Of a DNA stretch of 64,000 nucleotides, positions 3,251 through 60,345 are shown piece by piece. Source of the DNA: Octopus sinensis (Eukaryota); contig NC_042997.1 in assembly GCF_006345805.1 (NCBI RefSeq), positions 42,532,001 through 42,596,000 of the forward strand. The letters are read 5' to 3'. Under the pieces are notes generated by a model that worked only from the letters and a program-made list of their open reading frames with translations, had not been told where the DNA came from and did not search any database. Each line of letters opens with the position of its first letter. Position 1 is the first letter of the stretch. The position numbers and the translations under genes were made by a program.

Positions 3251-3284
3251 CTCTCTCTCTTTATTATATATATGTACATTCGAA

Positions 3285-3445
3285 CATAGCAGAGAACAGC
3301 TAGCCTTTGGCTGCTATTTGGATCCCGTTGTGTCCATTACTCTGATTTGTCTCTTGCTCAATTAAGCCAAGTGCCATGTATAACCAGTCAGAGGCCCTTA
3401 ATATGATCATGTGGGACAACCTGTTCACTACCCATTTGAGCCTAC
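3285..3445 (+). repeat. Diverged partial copy of the LTR-like repeat at 23014-23343
   Basis: tagcagagaacagctagcctttggc...gttgtgtccattactctgatt and ccatttgagccta align with tagcagataacagctaacctttggc...gttgtgtacactactctgatt and ccatttgagccta near 23016 and 23178. Confidence 0.55.
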
Positions 3446-3674
3446 TTTTCCTTCCAAAAACTCACCTTCTACTCATTTCGAAGTTTTTGGTTCCAGACCA
3501 AAGTGTGTGTATGTGTGTGCATGCATGCATGCAGACATCCAGATAGACACACACACACACACACACACACATATACTCATAATCTCTCATCACATTGCAC
3601 AAAGCCACCTCCCTCAATACTATTCCCTACCTCAGTTGAGGGTTCTTTGTCTTGCAAGTTACTTGGTGACCTCA

Positions 3675-10204: not shown

Positions 10205-10752
10205 ACATCATCACCATCTTCTTCTCCTCACCTCCACCAACTCCACCTCCACTTCCTCATCCACCTCCACTACCACCTCATCCTCCACCTCCTCCTCCTC
10301 CACCACTACCACCTCATTCTCCACCTCCACCTCCTCCTCCACCACCACCTCCACCACCTCCTCATCATCCACCTCCACCTCCTCCTCCTCCACCACCACC
10401 TCCACCTCCTCATCCACCTCCTCCACCACCACCACCACATCCTCCTCCTCCTCATCATCATCATCATCATCATCATTACCGTTGTTGACATTGTCAACAT
10501 CATCATGATCATCATCGTGTCATCGTTGTTATCATCGTTGTCGTCATCACCAAATCCACCACCACCACCTCCTCCTCCTCCTCCACCACATCCTCCTCCT
10601 CCTCCACCACCACCTCCTCTCCTCCTCCACCACCACCACATCCTCCTCCTCCTCCTCCTCATCATCATTACCGTTGTTGACATTGTCATCATCATCATGA
10701 TCATCATCGTGTCATCGTTGTCGTCATCACCAAATCCACCACCACCACCACA
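10205..10752. repeat. Compound trinucleotide microsatellite (CCA/CCT/CAT) with an internal 192-bp duplication
   Basis: ttaccgttgttgacattgtca...tcaccaaatccacc occurs at 10476 and 10668. Confidence 0.9.
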
Positions 10753-16246: not shown

Positions 16247-17355
16247 CTCCGAGACATCCGCCTCGCCAATGACACTCCAGTCTCACGCCATTTCCGCTCC
16301 ACCGGTCACTCCTTGCAACACCTGTCTGTGTTCAGATTGTCCTTGCACAGAGGCCATCCGGATTCCCGCTTGCGCCGTGAACAGGGATTAATCTTCTCTC
16401 TTCGCTCTTTTACGCCATTTGGGCTCAACTCTCCCCCCCTTTTCATCTAACCTCCTCCCCGACTCCTACTTCTCTTCAGTCCTTCATCGTTTCACCCCTA
16501 CTCTCTTTCCTTCCTCTTCCCTTCTTCCCTCTTCTCCCCTACTCTCTTTCTCTCTGCTCCCTCACTCCCCTTCTCTCTCCTCTCCCCTCCCTCCTCCCCT
16601 CTCTCTCCCCCATCCCCCGTCCCCCTCTCTTCTCTCCTTCTCTCCTCCTCTCTTTCCTCATATATGCACCTTCCCCTCCCCCATAAACCCACCCATCCCT
16701 ACTCTACCCCACACCTCACCCCTATCCCACACATCTCCCCTACATACCTCACCCCTATCCCATACCCCTCCCCCACATACCTCACCTCTAATCCCACCCT
16801 CTATCTACCCACAATACCCACTCTACCCCAGCCCCAGCCGAACCCACACCCCACCTGTGCTTTCCCCACTCTCGCCTCCCCCACCTCCCCACAACATCAC
16901 ACCACACTACACTACACCATACAACATTACACATCACATCACATCACAACACATCACCCACACACCCATCCCCACATCTCCACACCCACACATACATACA
17001 CACACACGTCCAGACCACCAGCCCTCTTTCACACGCACATACATACTCTCTTATACGCACACGCACCTTTGTGTTGGGGGCACCTTCATTTTGGAAGTCA
17101 CTTGACCCTGTTATCTCCCCTGCTGTCCCTCTAACGTCTGACCGCTGCCCGAAGTCAGGACGCCATGATAGACCGTTAGCTCCTACACGCATTTTTTTCT
17201 CTCCTTGTTTTTTCTGTGTATCTTTCTGTTGAAGAGCGTAGGCTCGAAACGTAAAAGACTTGTTTTATTTCTATTCCTGAGCGCTATACTAATACATTTG
17301 TTTGTTTGTACTCCACCTGCCTTCGTCTTTTGTTTATTTTCGTAAACTTTCCCTT
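16247..17355 (+). mobile_element. PLE family 1, 3' part: GIY-YIG C-terminus plus pLTR/3' UTR
   Basis: 16247-16450 encodes LRDIRLANDTPVSRHFRSTGHSLQHLSVFRLSLHRGHPDSRLRREQGLIFSLRSFTPFGLNSPPLFI* (PLE endonuclease end). A low-complexity UTR, hammerhead and T-rich end follow. Flanked by (TA)n on both sides. Confidence 0.85.
17221..17258 (+). ncRNA. Minimal type-I hammerhead ribozyme (variant core) in PLE1
   Basis: Stem I UCUUU, core CUGUUGA plus an extra A, stem II GAGC(GUAG)GCUC, GAAAC-GU-A, then AAAGA pairing with stem I. Confidence 0.75.
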
Positions 17356-17366
17356 TATATATATAT

Positions 17367-17792
17367 ATAGGCGCAGGAGTGGCTGTGTGGTAAGTAGCTT
17401 GCTAACCAACCACATGGTTCCGGGTTCAGTCCCACTGCGTGGCATCTTGGGCAAGTGTCTTCTGCTATAGCCCCGGGCCGACCAATGCCTTGTGAGTGGA
17501 TTTGGTAGACGGAAACTGAAAGAAGCCTGTCGTATATATGTATATATATATATGTATGTGTGTGTGTGTTTCTGTGTCTGTGTTTGTCCCCCTAGCATTG
17601 CCTGACAACTGATGCTGGTGTGTTTACGTCCCCGTCACTTAGCAGTTCAGCAAAAGAGACCGATAGAATAAGTACTGGGCTTACATAGAATAAGTTCCGG
17701 GGTCGATTTGCTCAACTAAAGGTGGTGCTCCAGCATGGCCGCAGTCAAATGACTGTAAAAGAGTAAAGTAAAAGAGTAAAGAGTAAAGAGTA
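17367..17792 (+). mobile_element. SINE A, young full-length copy
   Basis: ataggcgcaggagtggctgtgtggtaag (A-box-like), ggttcagtccc (B-box-like), internal (TA)/(TG), and (gtaaaaga)n tail. Confidence 0.95.
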
Positions 17793-18708: not shown

Positions 18709-18768
18709 TAAGGTGGCGAGCTGGCAGAAACGTTAGCACTCTGGGCGAAATGCTTAGCAGTATTTCGT
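18709..18768 (+). mobile_element. SINE D 5' head fragment fused to U6
   Basis: taaggtggcgagctggcagaaacgttagcactctgggcgaaatgcttagcagtatttcgt differs at 4 positions from the head at 18880. Confidence 0.9.
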
Positions 18769-18790
18769 ACTAGCTACGGCGGTACATATT

Positions 18791-18823
<33 letters not shown>

Positions 18824-18869
18824 GGCCCCTGTGCAAGGATGACATGCAAATTCGTGAAGCGTTCCATAT
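18767..18869 (+). pseudogene. U6: Full-length U6 snRNA retrocopy
   Basis: gtactagctacggcggtacatattctaaaattggaacgatacagagaagattagcatggcccctgtgcaaggatgacatgcaaattcgtgaagcgttccatat. The ACAGAGA box and AGC triad are intact. It ends in an A-rich run instead of an oligo-T terminator and has no upstream TATA/PSE context. Confidence 0.95.
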
Positions 18870-18879
18870 ATAAAAAAAA

Positions 18880-19293: not shown

Positions 19294-19470
19294 GCCATGG
19301 CTGTGTGGTAAGGTGCTTGCTCCTCAACCATATGGTTCAGGGTTCTGTACCACTGTGTGGCACCTTGGGCAAGTGTCTTCTGCTAGAGCCCTGGGATGAC
19401 CAAAGCCTTGTGAGTGGATTTGGTAGGCAGAAATTGAAAGAATCCTGTCGTGTATACATACATACAAGCA
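19294..19470 (+). mobile_element. Old SINE A 5' half
   Basis: ggccatggctgtgtggtaagg...caccttgggcaagtgtcttc...gaaattgaaagaatcctgtcg. Confidence 0.8.
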
Positions 19471-24899: not shown

Positions 24900-26255
24900 A
24901 TCATCATCATCATCATCATCATTTAGCGTCCATTTTCCATGCTAGCATGGGTTGGATGGTTCAACTGGGGTCTGTGAAGCCAGAAGGCTTCATCAGGCCC
25001 AGTCAGATCTGGCAGTGTTTCTACGGCTGGATGCCCTTCCTAACGCCAACCTATCCGTGAGTGTAGTGGGTGCTTTTTACGTGCCACCTGCACAGGTTCC
25101 AGACAGAGCTGGCAAACGGCCACGAACGGATGGTGCTTTTACGTGCCACCGGCACGGGGGCCAGGCGAGGCTGGCATCGGACACGGACGGATGGTGCTTT
25201 TACGTGCCACCGGCACAAGGGCCAGGCGAGGCTGGCAACAGACACGAGTGGATGGTGCTTTTACGTTCCACCGGCATGGGGGCTAGGCGAGGCTGGCAGC
25301 AGACACGAACGGATGGTGCTTTTATGTGCCACCGGCACGGAGGCCAGACGGGGCAGCTCCGACAACGACCACGATCGGATGGTTCGCTTAACCACAGCTG
25401 CAATTTCCACTGATGTTGATCGACCTCAATTTTGGTTCTGCTTTCTGATATCTGATTTGATTTGGTTTGATTTTGACTGTTCTCACTGGTCTTGCCGGGT
25501 CTTCTCACGCACAGCATACTTCCATAGGTCTCGGTCTCTAGTCATTTCCTTGGTGAGACCTAAAGTTCGAAGGTCGTGCTTCACCACCTCGTCCCAGGTT
25601 TTCCTGGGTCTACCTCTTCCACAGGTTCCCTCAACTGCTAGGGTATGGCACTTTTGCACACAACTATCTTCACCCATTCTTGTCACATGCCCGTACCAGC
25701 GCAGACGTCACTCTTGCACACCACAACTGATGCTTCTTAGGTCCAACTTTTCTCTCAAGGTACTTACACTCTGTCGATTATGAACACTGACATTACACAT
25801 CCATCGGAGCATACTGGCTTCATTTCTTGCGAGCTTACGCATATCCTCAGCAGTCACAGCCCATGTTTCACTACCATGTAGCATGGCTGTACGTACACAT
25901 GCATCATACAGCCTGCCTTTTACTCTGAGCAAGAGGCCTTTTGTCAACAGCAGGGGTAAGAGCTCTCTAAACTTTGCCCAGGCTATTCTTACTCTAGTAG
26001 TTACACTTTCAGCACCCCCATCCCCGCTACTGACTTGGTCACCTAGGTAGCGGAAGCTATCAACTACTTCTAGTTTTTCTCCCTGGAACGTGGTAGAAGT
26101 TGGTCTCTGCACATTTTCAGTGTTTATTGCTCCTGAGCATCTGCCACAGACAAAAACTATTTTTCTAGTTAGCCTTCCTTTGACATTGCTACACCTCTTA
26201 TGTGTCCATAGCTTACACTTGGTACACCTTATAGAGTTTCTACCTACACCTTTTC
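24900..26255 (-). mobile_element. RTE-clade LINE family 1, 5'-truncated (ORF end plus 3' UTR with 5 tandem units)
   Basis: ORFs 25708-26112 and 25483-25686 (GEKLEVVDSFRYLGD...MLHGSETW...CGRGRPRKTWDEVVKHDL). The 3' UTR ends in (GAT)n. Confidence 0.95.
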
Positions 26256-31663: not shown

Positions 31664-32063
31664 ATAGGCGTAGGAGTGGCTGTGTGGTAAGTAGCTTGTC
31701 TACCAACCACATGGTTCCGGGTTCAGTCCCACTGCGTGGCATCTTGGGCAAGTGTCTTCTGCTATAGCCCCGGGCCGACCAATGCCTTGTGAGTGGATTT
31801 GGTAGACAGAAACTGAAAGAAGCCTGTATATATATATGTATGTGTGTGTGTGTGTTTGTGTGTCTGTGTTTGTCCCCCTAGCATTGCTTGACAACCGATG
31901 CTGGTGTATTTACGTCCCCGTCACTTAGCGGTTCGGCAAAAGAGACCGATAGAATAAGTACTGGGCTTACAAAGAATAAGTCCCGGGGTCGATTTGCTCG
32001 ACTAAAGGCGGTGCTCCAGCATGGCCGCAGTCAAATGACTGAAACAAGTAAAAGAGAGAAAGA
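31664..32063 (+). mobile_element. SINE A, full length
   Basis: ataggcgtaggagtggctgtgtgg...gaaacaagtaaaagag. Confidence 0.95.
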
Positions 32064-37869: not shown

Positions 37870-38062
37870 TATATTATCCGAAATGTATAATATTAAATAT
37901 CTATGATGGCTGATCTTACCAATCAGTTTTGCATAAAGAATAAAATAACACAATGGTGTGTTAGGTAATAATCTGATTATATAACTTTATGCTCATCAGA
38001 GTTAGCCAATATGGAAGGGAATATGGCAACTGTTCTCTGTTATTGGAGATGAATTATATTAT

Positions 38063-38280
38063 ACGCGGGGCTTCCTTCAGTTTCCGCCTACCAAATCGAC
38101 TTACAAGGTTTTTTGGTCGGCTGTAAGCTATAGTAGAAGACACTTGCCCAAAGTACCACTCAGGGTGACTCATCCCAGAACCATGTGGCTGGGATACAAT
38201 CCATCTTACCACTACCACTCAGGGTGACTCATCCCAGAACCATGTGGCTGGGGAACAATCCATCTTACCACACAGCCTAT
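38063..38280 (-). mobile_element. Old SINE A 5' half with a 59-bp tandem duplication in the head
   Basis: taccactcagggtgactcatcccagaaccatgtggctggg...ccatcttacc occurs at 38154 and 38213. Confidence 0.8.
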
Positions 38281-38693: not shown

Positions 38694-39091
38694 ATAGGCG
38701 CAGGAGTGGCTGTGTGGTAAGTAGCTTGCTAACCAACCACATGGTTCCAGGTTCAGTCCCACTGTGTGGCATCTTGGGCAAGTGTCTTCTGCTATAGCCC
38801 CGGGTCGACCAATGCCTTGTGAGTGGATTTGGTAAACTGAAAGAAGCCTGTCGTATATATGTATATATATATATATATATATATACGTGTGTGTGTGTGT
38901 GTTTGTCCCCCTAGCATTGCTTGACAACCGATGCTGGTGTGTTTACGTCGCCGTCACTTAGCGGTTCGGCAAAACAGACCGATAGAATAAGTACTGGGCT
39001 TACAAAGAATAAGTCCCGGGGTCGATTTGCTCGACTAAAGGCGGTGCTCCAGCATGGCCGCAGTCAAAATGACTGAAACAAGTAAAAGAGT
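38694..39091 (+). mobile_element. SINE A, full length
   Basis: ataggcgcaggagtggctgtgtgg...gaaacaagtaaaagagta. Confidence 0.95.
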
Positions 39092-39283: not shown

Positions 39284-42200
39284 CATCATCATCATCATCA
39301 TCATCGTTTAGCGTCCTCTTTCCATGCTAGCATGGGTTGGACGGTTCGACTGGGGTCTGGGAAGCCAGAAGGCTGCAACCAGGCCCAGTCTGATCTGGCA
39401 ATGTTTCTACGACTGGATGCCCTTCCTAATGCCAACCACTCCCTGAGTGTAGTGGGTGCTATTTATGTGCCACCGGCACAGGTGCCAGACGATTCTGGCA
39501 AACGGCCACGATCGGATGGTGCTTTTTATGTGCCGCCGGCACGGGAGCCAAGCGAGGCTGGCAACGGCCACGAACGGATGGTGCTTTTTACGTGCCACCG
39601 GCATGAGACCAGTCGGTGCGGCGCTGGCAACGGCCACGTTCAGGATGGTTCTCTTACGTGCCACCGGCACTGGTATCTCAGCTGCAATTTCCATTGATCT
39701 ATTTCGATTCTCACTTGCCTCAACAGGTCTTCACAAGTAGAGTTTTGTGTCCCAAGAAGGGAAGGTATGCATAAGTGGACTGGCTACATCCCGTGTAGAA
39801 GGCCACGGGTTATGGTCTCACTTGTCCGGCCGGGTCTTCTCACGCACCGCATACTTCCAGAGGTCTTGGTCTCTAGTCATTTCCTAAAGTTCGAAGGTCG
39901 TGCTTCACCACCTCGTCCCAGGTTTTCCTGGGTCTACCTCTTCCACAGGTTCCCTCAACCACTAGGGTGTGGCACTTTTTCACACAACTATCTTCATCCA
40001 TTCTCGCCACATGACAATTCCAGCGCAAACGTCTCTCTTGCACACCACATCTGATGCTTCTTAGGTCCAGCTTTTCTCTCAAGGTACTTACACTCTGTCG
40101 AGTGTGAACACTGACATTACACATCCATCGGAGCATACTGGCTTCATTTCTTGTGAGCTTACGCTTATCCTCAGCAGTCACAGCCCATGTTTCACTACCA
40201 TGTAGCATGGCTGTACGTACACATGCATCATACAGCCTGCCTTTTACTCTGAGCGAGAGGCCTTTTGTCACCAGCAGGGGTAAGAGCTCTCTAAACTTTG
40301 CCCAGGCTATTCTTACTCTAGCAGTTACACTTTCAGCACACCTGCCCCTGCTACTGACTTGGTCCCCTAGGTAATGGAAGCTATCAACTATTTCTAGTTT
40401 TTCTCCCTGGAAAGTGGCAGAAGTTGGTCTCAGAGCATTTTCAGGGTTTATTGCTCCTGAGCATCTGCCACATACAAATAATATCTTCCCAGTTAGCCTT
40501 CCTTTGATATTGCTGCACCTCTTATGTGTCCATAGCTTACACTTGGTGCATCTTATAGAGTTTCTACCTACACCTTTTCTACAGATCGAGCAGGGCCATC
40601 TACCTGAAGGCGTTTGTGATTTGTCTACCTTCCTACTTATTAGGACTTTGGTTTTAGCTAGGTTGACTTTGAGGCCCTTCGATTCTAATCCTTGCTTCCA
40701 CACCTGAAACTTCTCCTCCAGTACTGATTGTGACTCAGCAATTAGAGCAAGGTCATCAGCATAGAGGAGCTCCCAGGGGCATCCTGTCTTGAATTCCTCC
40801 GTTATTGCCTGGAGGACTATGATAAATAGGAGGGGGCTGAGGACTGAGCCATGGTGGACCCCTACCTCTACCCGGAATTCTTCACTGTACTCGTTGCCAA
40901 CCCTCACCTTACTAGCAGCGTCTCTGTACATGGCTCGCACAGCTCTCACTAACCATTCATCTATCCCTAGTTTCCTCATTGACCACCAGATAAGGGGTCG
41001 GGGGACCCTGTCGAAGGCTTTCTCCATGTCAACAAAAGTCAGGTACAGGGGCTTATCTTTGGCTAGGTATTTCTCCTGCAGCTGCCTTACCGGGAATATA
41101 GCATCAGTGGTACTTTTCCCTGGCATGAACCCAAACTGCATCTCATCTAAACTAACTCTCTCTCTAATTAGTTGGGCTATGACCCTCTCCGTAACCTTCA
41201 TTACCTGATCCAACAGCTTGATACCTCTGTAATTATTTGTATCTAGGGCGTCACCTTTACCTTTGTAGCAGTTGACTATTATGCTGCTACACCAGTCATT
41301 GGGTATGACTCCTTCGTGTATCACCTGATTAACTATACGGGTGACTAGGCTATAGCCGACACTACCAGATATTTTGAGCATCTCTGCAGTGATTCCTGAT
41401 GGGCCTGGGGCTTTCTCTGTCTTCATGCTTCTAATTGCCTTAACTACCAAGGAACTGTCAACTCGGATAGCTGGTCCCTCTGTTGGGTCAACATTCGGTA
41501 GACTCTCTTTATCCAATTCATTTTCTTTATTCAGCAACCTTTCATAGTGGCATTTCCAAACCTCTCTCTTTGCATCCTCATTTAGCGCAAGTGAACCATC
41601 TTCCATGCGAACACACTTCTCTCCTACCACATCGCAATTCTCTCTCACACACTGTCTTGCAACACGAAACACCTCCAGTCTTTGGTCCTCACGGCGCAGA
41701 AAGTTGGCAAATTTTTTCTTATCTGCTTCCCCTCTGGCTAGATAAACCTGTCTCCTAGCTTCCCTTTTGGCAGTCTGATACAATTCCCTGCTACCACTCT
41801 TCTTCCAGTCCTTCCAAGCCTGTCTCTTTTCTCTAATAGCCCTGTCTACAACACTGTTCTACCACCACGTTACCTTGGGACGAGAGGGGACTTTGCACCA
41901 GCCACAGATCTGGTCAGTGGCTCTCAGCAGGTTGTCCCTTAGAAACGTCCAGTTGCCTTCTACCCCATGTGATACTCTATCCTCTTCTACTTCGTCAAAG
42001 CCTTCAAGTAACATGTCCCTAAATCTCTGTCCATTCGCAGGATCTTTAAGCTTCCAGATCCTTCTTCTCCATGTTGGTGATCTTCTGGTTGTCCTCTTAG
42101 TCCTGATCCTAAAGTCACTAACTACCAGTCTATGTTGCGGGGTACATTCTTCGCCTGGGAAGGTTTTGGCATTTATAAGCAGCCATCTTTCCCTTTGCCT

Positions 42201-46161: not shown

Positions 46162-46707
46162 TTTTATATATATATATATATATATAACTTACAACAACAT
46201 TTACAATATTCTTCATTAGAATCTACTGTTACTGAACAACATTTCCACTAAATGCCTACTTGACGACGACGACAACGACAACAACAACAACAAAAACAAC
46301 AACAACAACAACAACAACATATAAAAAACCTACTGATTTTTTTTTTACCAGTGATCACTGATTGACCTAATGATCAATTAGCATACATAGGTGGCTACTC
46401 CTAATATGTAGATAATGTATGTTGGTGATTTTGCTATAGTTACCATTCAACAAGTTTGAAATGAATGGACTTGATGGAAATAATTGGATGTACGACTGTA
46501 ATGATCTACCCTTATCAGTACCCACAATCAATATACTATAGAAAAATATTGGATAACAACCCATCAACTCTATGTTACATAACTCTATGATTATGTCTCC
46601 AACACTCTTCTTTCTGTACATTAACAAAACTACTTGCAATCACAAACACCAATTTTTACTCCAGTGCAGGTGAAATTACTCTTCATTTCTTCTTAATGTT
46701 CTGTGTA

Positions 46708-47085: not shown

Positions 47086-47117
<32 letters not shown>

Positions 47118-47356
47118 GGTACATTATTGCTATGTTTCAAAGTACAGAATATATCTATAGATTTTAGCCAATATTAGGGCTTGTCTACAACTATCATGCA
47201 ATGTCAAAGCAAGGAGACAGTAATGCCCACACACACACACACGCATATGTGGGTGTGTATACATATGGATACATATATCTAGTCAAACTGTCCAACCCAT
47301 GCCAGTATGGAAAACAGACGTTACAGGAAGATGATGATGACGTAGATTTATATATA

Positions 47357-47514
47357 ACAGGCTTCATTTAGTTTCTGTCTACCAAATCCACTTACAAGGC
47401 TTTGGTCAACCAAGGTCTATACTTGGCCATCCAAGGAACCATGCAGCAGAACTAAACTGGGAACCAAGTGATTGGGAAGCGAACTTCTTACCACACAGCC
47501 ACCCCTGCACCTGT
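47357..47514 (-). mobile_element. Old SINE A 5' half whose head is the first unit of the satellite
   Basis: acaggcttc...accaaatccacttacaaggctttggtc...cttcttaccacacagccacccctgcacct is the reverse complement of SINE A. Confidence 0.85.
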
Positions 47515-50500
47515 TCCACCCTTGCACCTGTTCCACCCCTGCACCTGTTCCACCCCTGCACCTATGCCACACCTGCACCTATGCCACACCTGCACCTATG
47601 CCACACCTGCACCTATGCCACCCCTGCACCTATTCCACCCCTGCCACTCCTGCACCTGTTCCACCCCTGCACCTGTTCCACCCCTGCACCTGTTCCACCC
47701 CTGCACCTATGCCACACCTGCACCTATGCCACCCCTGCACCTATTCCACCCCTGCACCTATGCCACTCCTGCACCTATGCCACACCTGCACCTATGCCAC
47801 CCCTGCACCTATGCCACCCCTGCACCTATGCCACCTCTGCACCTATGCCACTCCTACACCTATGCCACCCCTGCACCTATGCCACCCCATGCACCTATGC
47901 CACCCCTGCACCTCTGCCACACCTGCACCTATGCCACCCCTGCACCTGCACCTCTGCCACACCTGCACCTATGCCACCCCTGCACCTATGCCACCCCTGT
48001 ACCTATGCCACTCCTGCACCTATGCCACTCCTGCACCTACTCCACACCTGCACCTATGCCACCCCTGCCACACCTGCACCTATGCCACCCCTGCACCTAT
48101 GCCACCCCTGCACCTCTGCCACACCTGCACCTATGCCACCCCTGCACCTCTGCCACACCTGCACCTATGCCACCCCTGCACCTATGCCACCCCTGCACCT
48201 CTGCCACACCTGCACCTATGCCACCCCTGCACCTATGCCACTCCTGCACCTATGCCACCCCTGCACCTCTGCCACACCTGCACCTATGCCACCCCTGCAC
48301 CTATGCCACCCCTGCACCTCTGCCACACCTGCACCTATGCCACCCCTGCACCTCTGCCACACCTGCACCTCTGCCACACCTGCACCTATGCCACCCCTGC
48401 ACCTCTGCCACACCTGCACCTATGCCACCCCTGCACCTATGCCACACCTGCACCTATGCCACACCTGCACCTCTGCCACACCTGCACCTCTGCCACACCT
48501 GCACCTATGCCACCCCTGCACCTATGCCACACCTGCACTATGCCACACCTGCACCTATGCCACCCCTGCACCTCTGCCACACCTGCACCTCTGCCACACC
48601 TGCACCTATGCCACCCCTGCACCTCTGCCACCCCTGCACCTATGCCACACCTGCACCTATGCCACCCCTGCACCTATGCCACACCTGCACCTATGCCACC
48701 CCTGCCACACCTGCACCTATGCCACCCCATGCACCTATGCCACCCCTGCACCTCTGCCACACCTGCACCTATGCCACCTATGCCACCCCTGCCACACCTG
48801 CACCTACTCCACCTGCACCTATGCCACCCCTGCACTATGCACCTATGCCACCCCTGCACCTCTGACCTCTGCCACACCTGCACCTATGCCACCCCTGCAC
48901 CTATGCCAACCCTGCACCTATGCCCTCCTATGCACCTATGCCACACCTGCACCTATGCCACCCCTGCACCTATGCCACACCTGCACCTATGCCACTCCTG
49001 CACCTATGCCACTCCTGCACCTACTGCCACCCCTGCACCTATGCACCCCCCTGCCACACCTGCACCTATGCCACCCCTGCACCTATGCCACACCTGCACC
49101 TCTGCCACACTATGCCACCTATGCCACCCCTGCACCTATGCCACACCTGCACCTATGCCACACCTGCACCTATGCCACCCCTGCCACCTATGCCACACCT
49201 GCACCTATGCCCCCCTGCACCATGCCACCACCTGCACCTATGCCACCCCTGCACCTATGCCACACCTGCACCTATGCCACCCCTGCACCTATGCCACCCC
49301 TGCACCTATGCCACACCTGCACCTATGCCACTCCTGCACCTATGCCACCCCTGCACCTATGCCACCCCTGCACCTATGCCACCCCTGCACCTATGCCACC
49401 TCTGCACCTATGCCACTCCTACACCTATGCCACCCCTGCACCTATGCCACCCCATGCACCTATGCCACCCCTGCACCTCTGCCACACCTGCACCTATGCC
49501 ACCCCTGCACCTCTGCCACACCTGCACCTATGCCACCCCTGCACCTATGCCACCCCCTGTACCTATGCCACTCCTGCACCTATGCCACTCCTGCACCTAC
49601 TCCACACCTGCACCTATGCCCCCCTGCCACACCTGCACCTATGCCACCCCTGCACCTATGCCACCCCTGCACCTCTGCCACACCTGCACCTATGCCACCC
49701 TGCACCTCTGCCACACCTGCACCTATGCCACCCCTGCACCTATGCCACCCCTGCACCTCTGCCACACCTGCACCTATGCCACCCCTGCACCTATGCCACT
49801 CCTGCACCTATGCCACCTGCCACCTCTGCCACACCTGCACCTATGCCACCCCTGCACCTATGCCACCCTGCCCACCTCTGCCACACACCTGCACCTATGC
49901 CACCCCTGCACCCTGCCACACCTGCACCTCTGCCACACCTGCACCTATGCCACCCCTGCACCTCTGCCACACCTGCACCTATGCCACCCCTGCACCTATG
50001 CACACCTGCACCTATGCCACACCTGCACCTCTGCCACACCTGCACCTCTGCCACACCTGCACCTATGCCACCCCTGCACCTATGCCACACCTGCACTATG
50101 CCACACCTGCACCTATGCCACCCCTGCACCTCTGCCACACCTGCACCTCTGCCACACCTGCACCTATGCCACCCCTGCACCTCTGCCACACCTGCACCTC
50201 TGCCACACCTGCACCTATGCCACCCCTGCACCTATGCCACACCTGCACCTATGCCACCCCTGCCACACACCTGCACCTATGCCACCCCATGCACCTATGC
50301 CACCCCTGCACCTCTGCCACACCTACCTATGCCACCTATGCCACCCCTGCCACACCTGCACCTACTCCACACCTGCACCTATGCCACCCCTGCCACACCT
50401 GCACCTATGCCACCCCTGCACCTCTGCCACACCTGCACCTATGCCACCTATGCCACCCCTGCCACTCCTGCACCTATGCCACTCCTGCACCTACGCCACA

Positions 50501-53500
50501 CCTGCACCTATGCCACCCCTGCACCTATGCCACACCTGTACCTATGCCACTCCTGCACCTATGCCACTCCAGCACCTACTCCACACCTGCACCTATGCCA
50601 CCCCTGCCACACCTGCACCTATGCCACCCCTGCACCTATGCCACACCTGCACCTCTGCCACACCTGCACCTATGCCACCCCTGCACCTCTGCCACACCTG
50701 CACCTATGCCACCCCTGCACCTATGCCACCCCTGCACCTCTGCCACACCTGCACCTATGCCACCCCTGCACCTCTGCCACACCTGCACCTATGCCACCCC
50801 TGCACCTATGCCACACCTGCACCTCTGCCACACCTGCACCTATGCCACCCCTGCACCTCTGCCACACCTGCACCTATGCCACCCCTGCACCTCTGCCACA
50901 CCTGCACCTATGCCACCCCTGCACCTATGCCACACCTGCACCTATGCCACACCTGCACCTATGCCACCCCTGCACCTATGCCACACCTGCACCTATGCCA
51001 CCCCTGCACCTCTGCCACACCTGCACCTATGCCACCCCTGCACCTCTGCCACACCTGCACCTCTGCCACACCTGCACCTATGCCACCCCTGCACCTATGC
51101 CACACCTGCACCTATGCCACCCCTGCACCTATGCCACCCCTGCACCTATGCCACCCCTGCACCTATGCCACTCCTGCACCTATGCCACTCCTGCACCTAT
51201 GCCACCCCTGCACCTCTGCCACACCTGCACCTCTGCCACTCCTGCACCTATGCCACCCCTGCACCTCTGCCACACCTGCACCTCTGCCACACCTGCACCT
51301 CTGCCACTCCTGCACCTATGCCACCCCTGCACCTATGCCACCCCTGCACCTATGCCACCCCTGCACCTCTGCCACACCTGCACCTATGTCACTCCTGCAC
51401 CTCTGCCACACCTGCACCTATGCCACCCCTGCACCTCTGCCACACCTGCACCTATGCCACCCCTGCACCTCTGCCACACCTGCACCTCTGCCACACCTGC
51501 ACCTATGCCACCCCTGCACCTCTGCCACACCTGCACCTATGCCACCCCTGCACCTCTGCCACACCTGCACCTCTGCCACACCTGCACCTATGCCACCCCT
51601 GCACCTCTGCCACCCCTGCACCTATGCCACCCCTGCACCTATGCCACCCCTGCACCTATGCCACCCCTGCACCTATGACACTCCTGCACCTCTGCCACTC
51701 CTGCACCTATGCCACCCCTGCACCTCTGCCACACCTGCACCTCTGCCACTCCTGCACCTATGCCACCCCTGCACCTCTGCCACACCTGCACCTCTGCCAC
51801 ACCTGCACCTCTGCCACTCCTGCACCTATGCCACCCCTGCACCTATGCCACCCCTGCACCTCTGCCACACCTGCACCTCTGCCACTCCTGCACCTATGCC
51901 ACCCCTGCACCTCTGCCACACCTGCACCTCTGCCACACCTGCACCTATGCCACCCCTGCACCTATGCCACCCCTGCACCTATGCCACTCCTGCACCTATG
52001 CCACTCCTGCACCTACTCCACACCTGCACCTATGCCACCCCTGCACCTATGCCACCCCTGCACCCCTGCACCTATGCCACCCCTGCACCTATGCCACCCC
52101 TGCACCTATGCCACCCCTGCACCTATGCCACACCTGCACCTCTGCCACACCTGCACCTATGCCACCCCTGCACCTATGCCACTCCTGCACCTACTCCACA
52201 CCTGCACCTATGCCACCTATGCCACCCCTGCCACACCTGCACCTATGCCACACCTGCACCTATGCCACCCCATGCACCTATGCCACCCCTTCACCTCTGC
52301 CACACCTGCACCTACTCCCAACGCACCTATGCCACCCCTGCCACACCTGCACCTATGCCACACCTGCACCTATGCCACCCCTGCCACACCTGCACCTATG
52401 CCACACCTGCACCTATGCCACCCCTGCACCTCTGCCACACCTGCACCTACTCCACACCTGCACCTATGCCACCCCTGCCACACCTGCACCTATGCCACAC
52501 CTGCACCTATGCCACACCTGCACCTATGCCACCCCTGCACCTATGCCACCCCTGCACCTATGCCACCCCTGCACCTATGCCACCCCTGCACCTCTGCCAC
52601 ACCTGCACCTATGCCACTCCTGCACCTACTCCACACCTGCACCTATGCCACCCCTTCCACACCTGCACCTATGCCACCCCTGCACCTATGCCACCCCTGC
52701 CACACCTGCACCTATGCCACACCTGCACCTATGACACTCCTGCACCTCTGCCACACCTGCACCTATGCCACCTATGCCACCCCTGCCACACCTGCACCTA
52801 TGCCACACCTGCACCTATGCCACCCCATGCACCTATGCCACTCCTGCACCTATGCCACTCCTGCACCTACTCCACACCTGCACCTATGCCACTCCTGCAC
52901 CTACGCCACACCTGCACCTATGCCACCCCTGCACCTCTGCCACACCTGCACCTACTCCACACCTGCACCTATGCCACCCCTGCCACACCTGCACCTATGC
53001 CACACCTGCACCTATGCCACCCCATGCACCTATGCCACTCCTGCACCTATGCCACTCCTGCACCTACTCCACCCCTGCCACACCTGCACCTATGCCACCC
53101 CATGCACCTATGCCACCCCTGCCACACCTGCACCTATGCCACACCTGCACCTATGCCACCCCTCCCACACCTGCACCTATGCCACACCTGCACCTATGCC
53201 ACCCCATGCACCTATGCCACCCCTGCCACACCTGCACCTATGCCACCCCTGCCACACCTGCACCTATGCCACACCTGCACCTATGCCACCCCTGTCACAC
53301 CTACACCTATGCCACCCCTGCACCTATGCCACCCCTGCACCTCTGCCACACCTGCACCTATGCCACTCCTGCACCTACTCCACACCTGCACCTATGCCAC
53401 CCCTGCCACACCTGCACCTATGCCACACCTGCACCTATGCCACCCCATGCACCTATGCCACTCCTGCACCTATGCCACCCCATGCACCTATGCCACCCCT

Positions 53501-56123
53501 GCACCTCTGCCACACCTGCACCTATGCCACCTATGCCACCCCTGTCACACCTGCACCTATGCCACACCTGCACCTATGCCACCCCATGCACCTATGCCAC
53601 CCCTGCACCTCTGCCACACCTGCACCTATGCCACCCCTGCCACACCTGCACCTATGCCACACCTGCACCTATGCCACCCCATGCACCTATGCCACTCCTG
53701 CACCTATGCCACTCCTGCACCTACTCCACACCTGCACCTATGCCACCCCTGCACCTATGCCACCCCATGCACCTATGCCACCCCTGCACCTATGCCACAC
53801 CTGCACCTATGCCACCCCATGCACCTATGCCACCCCATGCACCTATGCCACCCCTGCACCTCTGCCATACCTGCACCTATGCCACCTATGCCACCCCTGC
53901 CACTCCTGCACCTATGCCACTCCTGCACCTACGCCACACCTGCACCTATGCCACCCCTGCACCTATGCCACACCTGCACCTATGCCACCCCTGCACCTAT
54001 GCCACCCCTACACCTATGCCACACCTGCACCTATGCCACCCCTGCACCTATGCCACACCTGCACCTATGCCACCCCTGCCACTCCTGCACCTACGCCACA
54101 CCTGCACCTATGCCACCCCTGCACCTATGCCACTCCTGCACCTACGCCACACCTGCACCTATGCCACCCCTGCACCTATGCCACACCTGCACCTATGCCA
54201 CACCTGCACCTATGCCACCCCTGCACCTACGCCACACCTGCACCTATGCCACCCCTGCATCTATGCCACCTATGCCACCCCTGCCACTCCTGCACCTATG
54301 CCACTCCTGCACCTATGCCACACCTGCACCTATGCCACACCTGCACCTATGCCACCCCTGCACCTATGCCACCCCTGCACCTATCCCACACCTGCACCTA
54401 TGCCACCCCTGCACCTACGCCACACCTGCACCTATGCCACCCCTACACCTATGCCACACCTGCACCTATGCCACCCCTGCACCTCTGCCACACCTGCACC
54501 TATGCCACCCCTGCCACTCCTGCACCTATGCCACTCCTGCACCTATGCCACCCCTGCACCTATGCCACACCTGCACCTATGCCACCCCTGCACCTCTGCC
54601 ACACTGCACCTATGCCACCCCTGCACCTATGCCACCCCTGCACCTATGCCACCCCTACACCTATGCCACACACCTGCACCTATGCCACCCCTGCACCTCT
54701 GCCACACCTGCACCTATGCCACCTATGCCACCCCTGCCACTCCTGCACCTATGCCACCCCTGCACCTATGCCACCTATGCCACCCCTGTCACACCTACAC
54801 CTATGCCACCCCACCCCTGCACCTATGCCACACCTGCACCTATGCCACCCCTGCACCTATGCCACCCCTGCACCTATGCCACACCTGCACCTATGCCACC
54901 CCTGCACCTATGCCACCCCTGCACCTATGCCACCCCTGCACCTATGCCACCCCTGCACCTATGCCACCCCTGCACCTATGCCACCCCTGCACCTATGCCA
55001 CCCCTGCACCTATGCCACCCCTGCACATGCCACACCTGCACCTATGCCACCCTGCACCTATGCCACTCCTGCACCACCTATGCCACCCCTGCACCTATGC
55101 CACCCCTGCACCTATGCCACCCCTGCCACTCCTGCACCCCTGCCACTCCTGCACCTCTGCCACACCTGCACCTATGCCACCCCATGCACCTATGCCACCC
55201 CTGCACCTCTGCCACACCTGCACCTCTGCCACACCTGCACCTATGCCACCCCTGCACCTCTGCCACCCCATGCACCTATGCCACTCCTGCCACACCTGCA
55301 CCTATGCCACTCCTGCACCACCTATGCCACTCTCTGCACCTCTGCCACCCCATGCACCTATGCCACTCCTGCACCTATGCCACACCTGCACCTCTGCCAC
55401 CCCTGCACTATGCCACTCCTGCACCTATGCCACTCCTGCACCTATGCCACACCTGCACCTCTGCCACACCTGCACCTATGCCACCCCTGCACCTATGCCA
55501 CTCCTGCACCTATGCCACACCTGCACCTCTGCCACCCCTGCCCCTATGCCACCCCTGCACCTATGCCACCCCTGCACCTATGCCACTCCTGCACCTCTGC
55601 CACACCTGCACCTATGCCACCCCATGCACCTATGCCACTCCTGCACCTCTGCCACCCCTGCCACACCTGCACCTATGCCACCCCTGCCACTCCTGCACCT
55701 ATGCCACACCTGCACCTCTGCCACACCTGCACCTCTGCCACCCCTGCACCTATGCCACCCCATGCACCTATGCCACCCCTGCACCTATGCCACACCTGCA
55801 CCTCTGCCACACCTGCACCTATACCACCCCATGCACCTATGCCACCCCTGCACCTATGCCACCCCTGCACCTCTGCCACCCCTGCACCTATTCCACCCCT
55901 GTCACACCTGCGCCACCCCTGCACCTATGCCACACCTACACCTATGCCACCCCTGCACCTATGCCACACCCACACCTATGCCACCCCTGCACCTATGCCA
56001 CCCCTGCACCTATGCCACCCCTGCACCTATGCCACCCCTACACCTATGCCACACCTGCACCTATGCCACCCCTGCACCTATGCCACCCCTGCACCTCTGC
56101 ACCTATTCCACCCCTGTACCTAT
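47498..56123. repeat. 8.6-kb tandem array of a 17-bp unit (GCCACCCCTGCACCTAT and variants), about 500 units
   Basis: Unit variants CCCC/CACC/CTCC and CTAT/CTCT/CTAC. The 17-aa period in all three plus frames confirms a 17-nt period. Confidence 0.98.
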
Positions 56124-56598
56124 GAAGAAATTACTTCTCTTTGACATTGATGAAGACTCCCTAACTCAATATCTCACTTGTTTGGGGCTGAGGACAGAAA
56201 CGTCGTTTCTCAGTGAAGAGGTCAGGGCTATTACTGGATTAACTGGCTATTCATATAAACTGGACACGTTTTTATTAACCTCTGAAACCAACAAAATTCA
56301 ATGGCTATGATGATAACCAATGTAGTTTTTCCCTATAACTTCAGAATAAAGCAACATATTAGCAATCAGTACAGCATTGACTAAAATGTATTGCATTATT
56401 TGTGCCAGCCAAGATAATTAGCTGGCAGGATTGTTAATATTGCTTAGAGGCATTTCTTCAAGCTTTATGGTCTGAGTTCAAATTCCACATCATTTTGGGG
56501 TTAATGAAATATAGTACGAGTTGGGCTCATGGGATGATGTGATCAACTACACTTTCCCACTGAAAAAAAAATCTCAGTCCTTAAGCCTACAGTAGAAA

Positions 56599-58091: not shown

Positions 58092-58465
58092 TCATCATCA
58101 TCATCATCATCGTTTAACGTCCGTTCTCCATGCTAGCATGGGTTGGACGGTTCGACCGGGGATCTGGGAAGCCAGAAGGCTGCACCAGGCTCCAGTCTTA
58201 TCTGGCAATGTTTCTACAGCTGGATGCCCTTCCTAACGCCAACCACTCCGTGAGTGTAGTGGGTGCTTTTTATGTGCCACCCGCATAGGTGCCAGGCGAG
58301 GCTGGCAACGGCCACAGTCGGATTGGTGCACTTTACGTGCCACCGGCACAGAAGCCAGTCGAGGCGGCACTGGCATCGGCCACGATTCGGATAGTGCTTT
58401 TTACGTACAACCAGTCCAGGGGTCCTGGCATCTGCCGGGTGCCAGTCATAGGATTGGTTCAATGT
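58092..58465 (-). mobile_element. RTE 3'-UTR fragment (3 units)
   Basis: Same terminus as 56599-56922. Confidence 0.9.
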
Positions 58466-59227: not shown

Positions 59228-59460
59228 CATCATCATCATTTAACATCCGTTTTCCGTGCTAGCATGGGTTGGACGGTTTTGACTGAGGGCTGGTGAACCA
59301 GATTGCTGCACCAGGCTCCAGTCTTGATCTGGCAGAGTTTCTACAGCTGGATACCCTTCCTAACGCCAACCACTCCGAGAGTATAGTGGGTGCTTTTTAC
59401 GTGCCACCTGCTCGGGGGCCAGTCAGGCGGTACTGGCAACGCCCTCGCTCGAATCTTTTA
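59226..59460 (-). mobile_element. RTE 3'-UTR fragment
   Basis: (CAT)n tail and ggatacccttcctaacgccaaccac...ggtgctttttacgtgccacc. Confidence 0.85.
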
Positions 59461-60345
59461 CACATATGACAAGCTTATTTCAGTTTCTGTCTACCAAATC
59501 CGCTCATAAGGCTTTGGTTGGTCCAAGGCCATAGTAGAAGGCACGTGCCTAAGGTGCCATGCAGTGAGACTGAACCCAGAACCACCTGATTGGGAAGCAA
59601 ACTTCTTATCACAGTCATGCATTTCTTTTCATTATCTTTTTTGCTGTGATGTACATTGTAACTGCTCAACTAACAGCTTCCCAGTCAAATGTTTTCTCTT
59701 AAGATATTTCATGGTATCTTTTGTTTAATACATCAATAATATGATTGTTAAAATTATATTTCTGATATGTATCAATATCCTGTTTGGAAGATACTGGCTG
59801 ATGGAGATCATTGATTGGCTGAATTTGAAAAGTAATAAATAAAATATCTCAAATGTTTTAAATTATATTCTAAATTCAAGCCTTCTTTTGGCTTTTTACT
59901 CAACTTTTCTTCCTAAATCAAAAAATGCTTTTAATTACAACAATCACTAGTTTCATCAGAGAGTTGCAAGTTTTTACTCCTTTCTTTAGCTTTATTCTTC
60001 TATGGTCTATATTGATAAAATAAGTACTATTAATGTACTGAGTTGATTCAATCAGCTACTTACCTTCCCGACACTATGCATCAAATCAATACGTTGTCTA
60101 GTGTATTAAAAAATCAAGGTAACTATGTACATAGGTATATAGATTCTGATACGTGTGTATTTGTACTTTTATGTGGATACAGAGATGGCTAAGTGGTTAA
60201 GAACTTTATTTTGTAATTATGACCCAAACTTTGTGAATGAAATTGGGTTGACGGAAACTGTGTGGAAGCCTGATACATGGACTGTATCTATAGTTCAAAA
60301 GGTCATCCTTGTCGTGTACAACCACACACATATATATATATATAT

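Follow-up and report, generated by a model that had tools for sequence, protein, structure and literature searches.

A multi-kilobase tandem array very probably grown from the 17-nt head of an old SINE in an octopus genome

The window, that is, the whole 64,000-nt stretch of octopus DNA analysed here, lies at 42.53-42.60 Mb of a 213.4-Mb scaffold, in the chromosome interior, and holds at a single locus an 8,626-bp tandem array of a 17-nt unit. The array adjoins a SINE on the minus strand, called the host SINE below. The features of the locus, followed by three reference copies of SINE A, are listed by position and strand.

46672..46680 (-): weak candidate target-site duplication, 3' copy, a 9-nt exact match to 56127..56135
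47115..47240 (-): what may be the degraded 3' half of the host SINE, weakly similar to nt 200-330 of SINE A (low-confidence local alignment, score 46)
47280..47339 (-): piece of another interspersed repeat, CATCATC...CCATACTGGCATGGGTTGGAC (blastn and direct reading)
47349..47497 (-): host SINE body, nt 18 to ~170 (blastn against SINE A, 47512-47349, and direct reading)
47498..56123 (-): 17-nt tandem array, ~507 unit-equivalents (TRF and unit census)
47498..47514 (-): proximal unit ACAGGTGCAGGGGTGGC, at once the last repeat unit and the SINE head, in register with the body
47498..49023 (-): SINE-proximal 1.5-kb block, one copy of an internal segmental duplication (local alignment)
49053..50578 (-): second copy of the 1.5-kb internal duplication (local alignment)
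56107..56123 (-): distal-most unit ATAGGTACAGGGGTGGA, which begins at SINE nt 1, with unique DNA (...gtaatttcttc) directly before it
56127..56135 (-): weak candidate target-site duplication AGTAATTTC, 5' copy, a 9-nt exact match to 46672-46680
17367..17775 (+): full-length SINE A reference of the youngest subfamily, single head ATAGGCGCAGGAGTGGC (blastn and head search)
31664..32052 (+): third SINE A copy, single head ATAGGCGTAGGAGTGGC (blastn and head search)
38694..39086 (+): second SINE A copy, single head (blastn and head search)

TRF reported positions 47498-56100 as a repeat of period 17 with 514.1 copies, 85% matches and 6% indels (consensus GCCACCCCTGCACCTAT), while our own parse ran from a first unit at 56123 to a last one at 47514, with an exact length of 17 nt in 366 of 458 parsed segments. 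The array has a GC content of 0.63 and a GC skew of -0.64. Its minus-strand unit, ATAGGTGCAGG(T/G/A)GTGGC, corresponds to SINE nt 1-17 and is identical to the SINE head at 15-16 of 17 positions; a search for the head with at most two mismatches returned 291 matches, where shuffled sequences lead one to expect none. The SINE A heads from which the original prediction started were found where it had placed them, exactly at 17367 and 38694 and with one mismatch at 31664. Two units dominate the array, ATAGGTGCAGGTGTGGC (132 sliding-window matches, 105 parsed units) and ATAGGTGCAGGGGTGGC (100 and 94, respectively), each with two mismatches to the SINE A head. The form gccactcctgcacctat, which had been named as the common variant, turned out to be a minor one, with 33 sliding-window matches and 26 parsed units, or ~7% of the units. 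At the distal edge, ...ttcttc is followed directly by ATAGGTACAGG, and the array starts exactly with SINE nt 1 (ATAGG) at 56123, so that the clean stop predicted for this position, at the SINE 5' end, was recovered. At the other edge, ACAGGTGCAGGGGTGGC passes on the minus strand without a gap into TGTGTGGTAAGAAGTT... of the SINE body.

This gapless, in-register junction agrees with the earlier claim that the array runs on from a minus-strand SINE A, but the assignment to SINE A does not stand. Along 170 nt, the host SINE has 75% identity to SINE A (blastn), and its closest copy elsewhere in the genome is only 80-81% identical. Its box A reads TGGCTGTGTGG, and its B box has decayed to AGTTTAGTTCT, compared with GGTTCAGTCCC in SINE A. 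Judged by these sequence comparisons, the host SINE is related to SINE A but old and diverged, and is not SINE A proper. The fragment at 47280..47339 comes after the central (TA)n of the host SINE and interrupts or truncates it; flank positions 173-232 were found again by blastn at 10 other places in the window. No convincing target-site duplication was found around the SINE plus array, the best candidate being the 9-nt match listed above, for which a chance expectation of ~0.03-0.1 makes it suggestive only.

A 25-mer spanning the array junction occurs 211 times in the 2.72-Gb assembly, and all 211 occurrences lie inside the array. A degenerate head-to-head 17-nt junction (at most two mismatches) was found 594 times genome-wide, 393 of them in the array. 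Local alignment of 47498-49023 with 49053-50578 gave 97.6% identity, compared with 93-95% for in-register controls at other offsets, and long exact repeats recur within the array at offsets of 1558-1565 nt, the longest exact internal repeat being 189 nt. Strings of unit types show recurring multi-unit motifs, that is, higher-order patterns; the CpG of GGCGCAGG is retained in one of ~500 units, with nine CpGs in the entire array; and GGAACAGG units are confined to the SINE-near part as locus-specific edge variants. The 1.5-kb duplication, the higher-order unit patterns and the near-total loss of CpGs together point to growth in place. The prediction that a single SINE head multiplied in place to about 500 copies is thus well supported, given also that the array joins the SINE body in register, ends cleanly at SINE nt 1, is found in its variant form at a single locus, contains internal duplications and has independent replicate loci of the same architecture, described below. 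We consider it very probable that the array is a SINE-derived minisatellite in which the 17-nt head of an old SINE was amplified on the spot.

The starting point would have been an old, 5'-complete copy of an abundant SINE on the minus strand, the 5'-terminal 17-nt segment of which was tandemly duplicated into a small seed. The seed would then have expanded in place to ~500 units (8.6 kb) by unequal exchange or replication slippage, in steps acting on single units as well as on multi-unit blocks. Judged from the architecture alone, the SINE would have come first and the expansion later, and most of the amplification probably took place after the founder unit had lost its CpGs. Part of the array length and of the 1.5-kb internal duplication could stem from the assembly. 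It is nonetheless improbable that a real array owes its size and internal layout chiefly to a long-read mis-join or to over-expansion of a shorter repeat. The assembly is presumably a long-read plus Hi-C build at scaffold level, and an adjoining near-identical 1.5-kb block is a feature that mis-assembly can create; against this, the units are heterogeneous and fall into consistent variant classes with edge variants (GGAACAGG near the SINE only), the two blocks are separated by 36 substitutions plus indels, and an independent array of similar size lies on another contig.

An origin of this kind is not confined to this locus: roughly 100 or more other loci carry smaller arrays of like design with units of 17-37 nt, including a second multi-kb array. 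Locus patterns were searched as exact matches only, and all counts given here are lower bounds biased to young copies. Among 29,787 exact head-plus-body SINE copies in the genome, 35 have a second 17-nt head; these young copies bear 2-9 tandem heads, and 6, 7 and 9 perfect 17-nt heads precede SINE A at three loci. Nested insertion into an older SINE was excluded for the multi-head copies, the 3' flanks of which are unique DNA. Dozens of further loci have head units of 21-37 nt, among them one array of 18 units of 37 nt and one of 7 units of 33 nt, and an unplaced contig (C39) holds the second multi-kb array, 7.0 kb made of 279 x 25 nt, which starts cleanly at ATAGG and then runs into a SINE body, as do the arrays designated C18 and C25. 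Unit length is constant inside every array (18 x 37, 7 x 33, 279 x 25). The genome check of whether other 17-nt arrays also adjoin SINE bodies gave a positive answer for those examined, with the exception of locus L031, where no SINE body was seen adjoining ~14 CpG-rich units of the 17-nt repeat. Head arrays are a genome-wide class arising by a recurrent, family-wide process, of which the 8.6-kb array is the extreme case.

These replicate loci also bear on a reading in which an unrelated GC-rich minisatellite happens to lie beside the SINE and resembles its head by chance. GC-rich, strand-asymmetric minisatellites with 15-20-nt units are common, and the array unit presumably resembles classical minisatellite core sequences. 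Nevertheless, the unit agrees with the head at 15-16 of 17 positions, both ends of the array are exactly in phase, and the design of a head array plus SINE body recurs at many independent loci with differing unit lengths; the replicates, including the C39 array and those of 18 x 37 and 7 x 33 nt, effectively refute a chance resemblance, to which we attach next to no probability.

By size (unit ~10-100 bp, array ~0.5-30 kb, discrete locus) the array falls among minisatellites. The original label of a satellite holds in the sense of a minisatellite-type array, with its 17-nt unit and 8.6 kb at one locus, but not in the classical sense of tens of kb to Mb at many heterochromatic loci: 393 of the 594 junctions sit in the 8.6-kb locus, a genome-wide count to be read in the light of the frequent under-assembly of satellites. 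With GC-rich minisatellites (VNTRs) the array shares the 17-nt unit, the single-locus array of 8.6 kb, the GC content of 63%, a strong strand asymmetry and an internal variant-repeat structure, and it differs from them in that its origin is traced to a transposable-element terminus.

SINE-derived satellites (sSats) are known in squamates (Vassetzky, Kosushkin and Ryskov 2023, Mob DNA 14:21, PMC10702118), and the array is an extreme case of this known kind of repeat, not a new kind. Its unit has homology to part of a SINE in the same genome (15-16 of 17 positions against nt 1-17), a longer terminal unit leads into the SINE (~150 nt of SINE body in register at 47349-47497), and loci range from short to long (35 with 17-nt units, dozens with 21-37-nt units, and two multi-kb arrays). 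The subtelomeric tendency of sSats, which is no strict criterion, is not seen at 42.53-42.60 Mb of the 213.4-Mb scaffold, the ends of which are presumed to be telomeric. In the sections of that paper drawn on here, squamate sSats likewise consist of SINE-portion units, with an array end that passes through a longer terminal unit into the SINE; they comprise many loci of 2-8 units and rare loci of hundreds to ~1000 units, and they show alternating subvariants and independent emergence from differing parts of SINEs (PMC10702118). Their units, however, are 67-215 nt long and mostly internal, e.g., nt 42-108 including box B, whereas the octopus units measure 17-37 nt and start at the first 1-3 nucleotides of the SINE. 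Squamate sSats are also described in reptiles, from hundreds to thousands of loci that favour subtelomeric regions, whereas the long 17-nt form here occupies one interior locus and the head arrays belong to a cephalopod-type genome. A frequently 5'-truncated outer unit is seen here, and the same sections contain no description of one for squamate sSats (PMC10702118). Amphibian tandem families related to tRNA, namely newt PolIII/TAN and Xenopus satellite I/OAX, are described there as having units of 200-750 nt that contain a whole tRNA-like gene, with an unproven link to SINEs; they resemble the octopus array as tandem repeats with Pol III-type tRNA-like sequence (PMC10702118), but the link to a SINE is direct in the octopus array and its unit is only a 17-nt fragment.

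How the seeds arise was approached through 82 parsed loci, at which the repeat restarts at SINE nt 1 (40 loci), nt 2 (13) or nt 3 (12). The 5'-terminal 17 nt of the SINE comprise a 4-nt leader, a 5' acceptor-like stretch and the start of box A (4 nt), and breakpoints lie inside or just after box A (nt 14-24) at 51 of the 82 loci, with breakpoints sampled outside nt 18-20. At least one extra nucleotide is present at 38 of the 82 junctions, and 24 of these have only 1-3. The outermost head is cut to 5-14 nt at 12 of the 35 loci, the shortest ones (5-7 nt) being within chance expectation, and 5'-truncated outermost units also occur in arrays of longer units. The youngest subfamily accounts for all 20 complete multi-head copies with 17-nt units, compared with 15 of 40 controls, and multi-head copies make up ~0.1-0.3% of young SINE copies. 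The restarts at SINE nt 1-3, the frequent 5' truncation of the outermost unit and the restriction of complete multi-head copies to the youngest subfamily suggest that the seed, of two or a few heads, arises or travels via retrotransposition and not through random DNA slippage. Identical junctions recur: a breakpoint at nt 17 is shared by ~30 loci, one at nt 22 by 15 or more and one at nt 24 by 8 or more. Such recurrence fits inheritance from multi-head source genes and a de novo hot spot equally well.

In mouse L1, the 5' promoter monomers are ~200 bp long, act in Pol II transcription and are a fixed feature of the family. By analogy, the multi-head state may be a heritable promoter-repeat structure, with source SINEs transcribed from an upstream head, each extra unit adding a whole or partial box A, and copies spreading as small subfamilies; the window array would then be the runaway expansion of one copy that may once have been a source gene. 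We regard this as possible but doubtful. The same junction types at many loci, the clustering of breakpoints in or just after box A, outer units truncated as in L1 monomer arrays, and complete multi-head copies only in the youngest, most active subfamily argue for it. Multi- and single-head young copies, however, share their diagnostic positions, with no separate lineage within 150 nt; no offspring of the window array exist, its 211 junction 25-mers all being local; the B box of the host SINE is decayed; and a Pol III transcript of 8.6 kb is implausible. As an analogy only, the likeness to L1 lies in a variable tandem number at the extreme 5' end, an often truncated outermost unit, and units that overlap the promoter region, here apparently part or all of box A, whereas L1 monomers are fixed in the family and multi-head SINEs form but the small fraction of young copies given above. 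Tentatively, SINE heads might behave like L1 monomers as segments running from the Pol III start site to a point in or just after box A, which are gained or passed on in the course of retrotransposition. It is likewise conceivable, at a similarly tentative level, that multi-head RNAs propagate and seed multi-kb satellites by occasional DNA-level slippage. If this is true, retrotransposon promoters would give rise to satellite DNA directly and recurrently, by a defined mechanism. SVA, a composite, Pol II-transcribed element, carries a 5' (CCCTCT)n repeat and an internal VNTR, the hexamer not being derived from a promoter head of its own; it is comparable as a non-autonomous retrotransposon whose length-variable 5' tandem repeats are passed on by retrotransposition while changing length.

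Seeds might instead be made anew at each event, if the LINE reverse transcriptase, once at the 5' end of the SINE RNA, jumps or realigns to a site 17-37 nt from such an end, on this SINE RNA or on a second one, and recopies the head, with DNA-level slippage expanding the repeat later. Restarts do coincide with 5' ends of the RNA (both nt 1 and nt 3 are adenines, and single copies are seen to begin there as well), template jumps of non-LTR reverse transcriptases reportedly leave extra bases, as seen at 38 of the 82 junctions (24 with only 1-3), and outer units are truncated. On direct reading, however, the RNA 5' end (ATAG) and the sequence beyond the breakpoints share no microhomology, independent jumps would not yield a constant unit length per array, and copies with 3-9 heads are far commoner than a per-jump probability of ~0.002 predicts. 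We surmise that jumping of this kind is a rather unlikely source of the seeds.

The original prediction further held that the array junctions match the first 8 nt of the A-box consensus. The literal 8-nt match is confirmed in 440 of the 488 TGGC-initiated junctions, among which TGGCATAG accounts for 344 and TGGCAGAG for 96. Over the full consensus TRGCNNAGTGG, however, the junctions TGGCATAGGTG and TGGCAGAGGTG match 7 of the 9 specified positions, compared with 8 of 9 for the SINE's own TGGCTGTGTGG. No intact box B (GGTTCGANNCC) was found at a workable distance downstream, the host SINE having AGTTTAGTTCT and SINE A GGTTCAGTCCC, and, except for the nearest ones, the units are hundreds to thousands of nt distant from the host B box. 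The idea that hundreds of partial A-boxes now lie upstream of a B-box accordingly found no support, with the host B box decayed and no offspring carrying the array junction. Because of this decay, the 7/9 match and the lack of offspring, it appears unlikely on sequence grounds that hundreds of A boxes form a working Pol III unit at this locus. The agreement of 440 of the 488 junctions with the first 8 nt of box A could also suggest a functional cluster of TFIIIC or Pol III binding sites, e.g., an insulator or chromatin boundary, which we judge highly improbable. The full match to box A is just 7/9, box B, which chiefly determines TFIIIC recruitment, is not in the units and is decayed in the host SINE, and the sister arrays, with units of 17-37 nt, include some with box A and some without, which implies that the shared factor is the SINE 5' end and not a binding site. 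In our reading, the array is probably without function, a neutral by-product and not a Pol III unit.

The SINE itself carries a box A, a box B and a CORE-like motif, the box A-like and box B-like motifs having been spotted by eye. ARAGORN found no tRNA in the window, and Rfam gave no tRNA match on the SINE A head even at E<=10. The motif CTTGGGCAAGT is visible in SINE A by direct reading; we take it to be the CORE central-domain motif, which makes this a candidate CORE-type SINE. Octopus OR-type SINEs are described as tRNA-derived and CORE-type (Ohshima and Okada 1994, as cited in PMC4758252 and PMC4824008).

The dominant tandem repeat of the window was placed by TRF at 47498-56100, with a period of 17 nt, 514 copies, 85% matches and the consensus GCCACCCCTGCACCTAT. 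Its G+C content is 63% with a GC skew of -0.64, whereas the kilobases on either side have 33-47% G+C. The unit is ATAGGTGCAGGNGTGGC in minus-strand orientation, and parsing the array into units yielded 458 segments, of which 366 have a length of exactly 17 nt.

Unit types of the array in the minus-strand parse, with number of units
ATAGGTGCAGGTGTGGC, 105
ATAGGTGCAGGGGTGGC, 94
AGAGGTGCAGGGGTGGC, 54
AGAGGTGCAGGTGTGGC, 30
ATAGGTGCAGGAGTGGC, 26
18-nt variant, 21
26-nt variant, 14

The variant that the original prediction described as common is minor among the array units. From their sequence, the dominant units look like doubly CpG-decayed forms of ATAGGCGCAGGCGTGGC, and the intact ATAGGCGCAGGCGTGGC head variant is present in other, older arrays (genomic loci L031 and L034).

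The continuity claimed between the array and a SINE was borne out at both ends. On the minus strand, the last array unit, ACAGGTGCAGGGGTGGC, passes without a gap into the SINE body, TGTGTGGTAAGAAGTTCGCTTCCCAATCAC..., while the distal edge reads ...gtaatttcttc followed by ATAGGTACAGG, a start exactly at SINE nt 1. The SINE family is represented by about 20 copies in the window, and young full-length SINE A (17367-17775, 31664-32052 and 38694-39086) starts with ATAGGCGCAGGAGTGGC followed by TGTGTGGTAAG. The host, however, is not SINE A itself, as had been proposed: the host SINE (47512-47349) aligned to SINE A nt 3-172 with 75% identity, and in a DNA search of the rest of the genome its best other copy was 80-81% identical. 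As judged by these alignments, it is an old relative of SINE A. A search for target-site duplications around the window array returned only a weak 9-nt candidate, 670 nt past the SINE body. Neither ARAGORN nor Rfam (at the gathering threshold and also at E<=10) matched the head to a tRNA, and box-like tRNA motifs are visible by eye only. On the basis of a sequence motif, the family is probably the octopus OR-type CORE-SINE. Many of the older copies (e.g. 19298-19464, 38060-38277 and 59459-59613) reach only from nt 1 to about nt 170, stopping at a central (TA/TG)n microsatellite, and thus the SINE A of about 400 nt may be a composite of a short SINE and a second module.

Amplification in place, the second part of the original prediction, was supported by several observations. 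In assembly G000 (2.72 Gb, 13,516 contigs), on which all genome-wide counts are based, the junction-spanning 25-mer CTGCACCTATGCCACNCCTGCACCT occurs 211 times, and all 211 lie inside the window array; this array variant is restricted to a single locus. A degenerate head-to-head junction (up to 2 mismatches) was found 594 times genome-wide, 393 of these in the window array. The order of unit types contains recurring multi-unit motifs, and internal exact repeats reach 189 nt. Moreover, the 1.5 kb next to the SINE (47498-49023) shares 97.6% identity with the neighboring 1.5 kb (49053-50578), compared with 93-95% for in-register controls. Close to the SINE, over about 200 nt, the array carries edge-specific GGAACAGG units. 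The CpG of GGCGCAGG survives in a single unit, and 9 CpGs remain in the array as a whole. Most likely, the founder of the amplified array was already CpG-less before amplification, so that most of the expansion would postdate the arrival of the SINE by a considerable margin.

By its assembled size and number of loci, the window array is a minisatellite rather than a classical satellite, and it is most likely neutral DNA. On the plus strand (47598-56144), all three reading frames across the array contain few or no stop codons, giving a stop-free frame of about 8.5 kb, and the longest ATG-to-stop ORF has 2,848 codons (others 2,401, 1,365 and 1,181). These frames are a mechanical result of the unit sequence, since the unit is C-rich, lacks TAA, TAG and TGA, and its length of 17 is coprime to 3; the ORFs were accordingly set aside as a gene. 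Gene finders could nonetheless be misled here into calling a giant Pro/His/Cys/Thr-rich 'protein'. The array is likely hypervariable and, as such, may be of practical use as a marker.

The window array is the extreme of a family-wide phenomenon, and its architecture has been independently replicated many times. Genome-wide counts were obtained with exact or near-exact patterns and are lower bounds skewed to young copies. The exact pattern of one head plus body matched at least 29,787 copies, with a further head upstream in 35. All 35 multi-head loci were retrieved: about 15 carry exactly two complete heads and two carry three, while loci with 6, 7 and 9 heads (3/35) are the only ones in the genome with at least four near-perfect SINE A heads. 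The outermost head is cut to its last 5-14 nt in 12, among which L036, a locus with two complete heads plus a truncated outer head, was counted, and units are longer in 3 of the 35. Relaxed breakpoint patterns gave 101 and then 226 further matches, with head units of 21-40 nt. Each such locus that was examined (the arrays on contigs C18 and C25 plus several loci of 2-3 units) continues into a full SINE.

Further head arrays in assembly G000
C18:42214568-42215207 (L114), 18 units of 37 nt, very homogeneous, outermost unit 5'-truncated, followed by a full SINE
C25:8423174-8423382 (L115), 7 units of 33 nt, very homogeneous, outermost unit 5'-truncated, followed by a full SINE
C39:9248-16226 (L111, L112), on an unplaced 22-kb contig, 279 units of 25 nt, 7.0 kb
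C5:18076700-18076940 (L031), about 14 copies of CpG-rich ATAGGCGCAGGCGTGGC in 17-nt units

In the C39 array, unique DNA gives way to ATAGG at a clean start, and the other end runs in register into a SINE body. Its unit corresponds to SINE nt 1-25, is partly arranged as 50-nt dimers and has intact CpGs, so that this array is probably younger than the window array. The expectation that other arrays of 17-nt units would also abut a SINE held for those examined, except L031: no SINE body was seen beside it, and the one side traced leads into the 3' part of a SINE in inverted orientation. L031 is the sole examined array of 17-nt units outside the layout of an array plus its own body. At L037 (contig C994, about 3100-3500), a (TA)n tract separates two SINE copies whose heads face one another; both copies bear a few degenerate head repeats, and the arrangement is palindromic.

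The origins of satellites and minisatellites are mostly reconstructed after the fact. Here a birth series is kept in one genome, from about 30,000 single-head copies through about 100 with 2-3 heads and a handful with 6-18 to two arrays, one with 279 units and the other with about 500, and every stage except L031 is still joined to its parent SINE.

Unit boundaries were analyzed in 82 loci parsed from a pattern with the restart point left free. SINE nt 1 is where the second copy begins anew in 40 loci; in 13 others it begins at nt 2, in 12 at nt 3 and in 17 at nt 4-7. Breakpoints fall at nt 21-24 in 51 loci, with a tail reaching nt 40, the patterns covering breakpoints at nt 17 and from nt 21 onward and restarts from nt 1 onward. 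With the nt-17 class included, the nt 21-24 breakpoints group within box A or just beyond it (nt 14-24). No extra nucleotides occur at the junction in 44 loci and 1-3 in 24, no microhomology was found at the breakpoints, and unit length is constant inside any one array. All 20 complete 17-nt multi-head copies belonged to the youngest subfamily, compared with 15 of 40 control copies taken from the same pattern list. No separate multi-head lineage was visible, as multi-head copies cannot be told apart, over the first 150 nt of the body, from youngest-subfamily copies with one head.

As a source of seeds, tandem duplication in situ of some random stretch does not fit, for it would not start at the first base of the element and cannot leave a 5'-truncated outer unit. 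Nested insertion, in which a new SINE lands at nt 17 of an older one, was ruled out because at the 35 multi-head loci the 3' flank consists of unique DNA or of a full, independent SINE and never of the SINE remainder from nt 18. A scripted exact-match search for target-site duplications gave possible short matches at 9 of these 35 loci. Only at L040, L067 and L069 do they directly follow the SINE tail, that of L069 being of (TA)n-type low complexity; the remaining 6 are too short, too distant or too low in complexity to count.

We propose that RNA is the route by which seeds with two or a few heads arise or travel, because restarts lie at the SINE 5' end, outer units are often truncated, the youngest subfamily is favored and nested insertion is excluded. 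Multi-head source genes transcribed from the upstream head could supply such seeds; so could a reverse transcriptase re-copying the 5' end of SINE RNA. Both models stand, given that multi-head and single-head young copies are alike over 150 nt and that the breakpoints lack microhomology. After such RNA-linked seeding, arrays would lengthen by slippage and unequal exchange at the DNA level. A link between retrotransposition and satellite seeding is testable, as the boundaries are non-random and lie at the SINE transcription start and box A, and as many outer units are 5'-truncated.

The array junctions were also suggested to supply partial A-boxes for Pol III. Their sequences were as described (TGGCATAG in 344, TGGCAGAG in 96), and they resemble box A because the unit opens with ATAG and closes with the initial 4 nt of the real box A. 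Nevertheless, a functional Pol III role at the window array seems unlikely: the junction 11-mer agrees with the box A consensus at 7 of 9 specified positions, where the SINE's own box agrees at 8, box B of the host SINE carries four changes relative to SINE A, no offspring of the array was detectable with the junction 25-mer across the whole assembly, and units of sister arrays vary in how much of box A they hold, from part of it to all of it to a stretch running beyond it. In young two-head copies, we hypothesize that multi-head RNAs could owe their making to the extra box A, whether partial or complete.

SINE-derived satellites of this layout have been described in 56 squamate genomes (PMC10702118). 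As far as that account goes, the terminal unit likewise extends into the SINE, and many short loci occur alongside rare ones of hundreds to about 1000 units, as in octopus. In contrast to those satellites as described there, the octopus arrays have a very short unit anchored at the extreme 5' end of the SINE and truncated outer units, and belong to a different host lineage. The 5' monomers of mouse L1 are only a functional analogy to the SINE heads. No prior report of head-derived arrays in cephalopod SINEs was found in the literature searched, and our results appear to extend SINE-derived satellites from squamate reptiles to an octopus genome.

Several other features of the window were recorded.

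18767-18873, plus strand, a full-length U6 spliceosomal snRNA gene (Rfam RF00026, 103.7 bits, E 6.6e-26); no other Rfam match in the window reached the gathering threshold
25069-25354, 39455-39603 and 58263-58406, a different interspersed repeat with internal 61-63-nt tandem repeats (GGTGCTTTTACGTGCCACCGGCAC...), 2-5 copies per element
10236-10660 and 16524-16957, long C/T-rich simple or low-complexity tracts with (CCT)n, (CCACCT)n and C-rich 15-33-nt periods

Fragments of the GGTGCTTTTACGTGCCACCGGCAC-bearing element, starting with (CAT)n...CCATGCTGGCATGGGTTGGAC, adjoin many SINE copies, including the host SINE (47280-47339). The C/T-rich tracts share the strand bias of the array and are unrelated to it in sequence.
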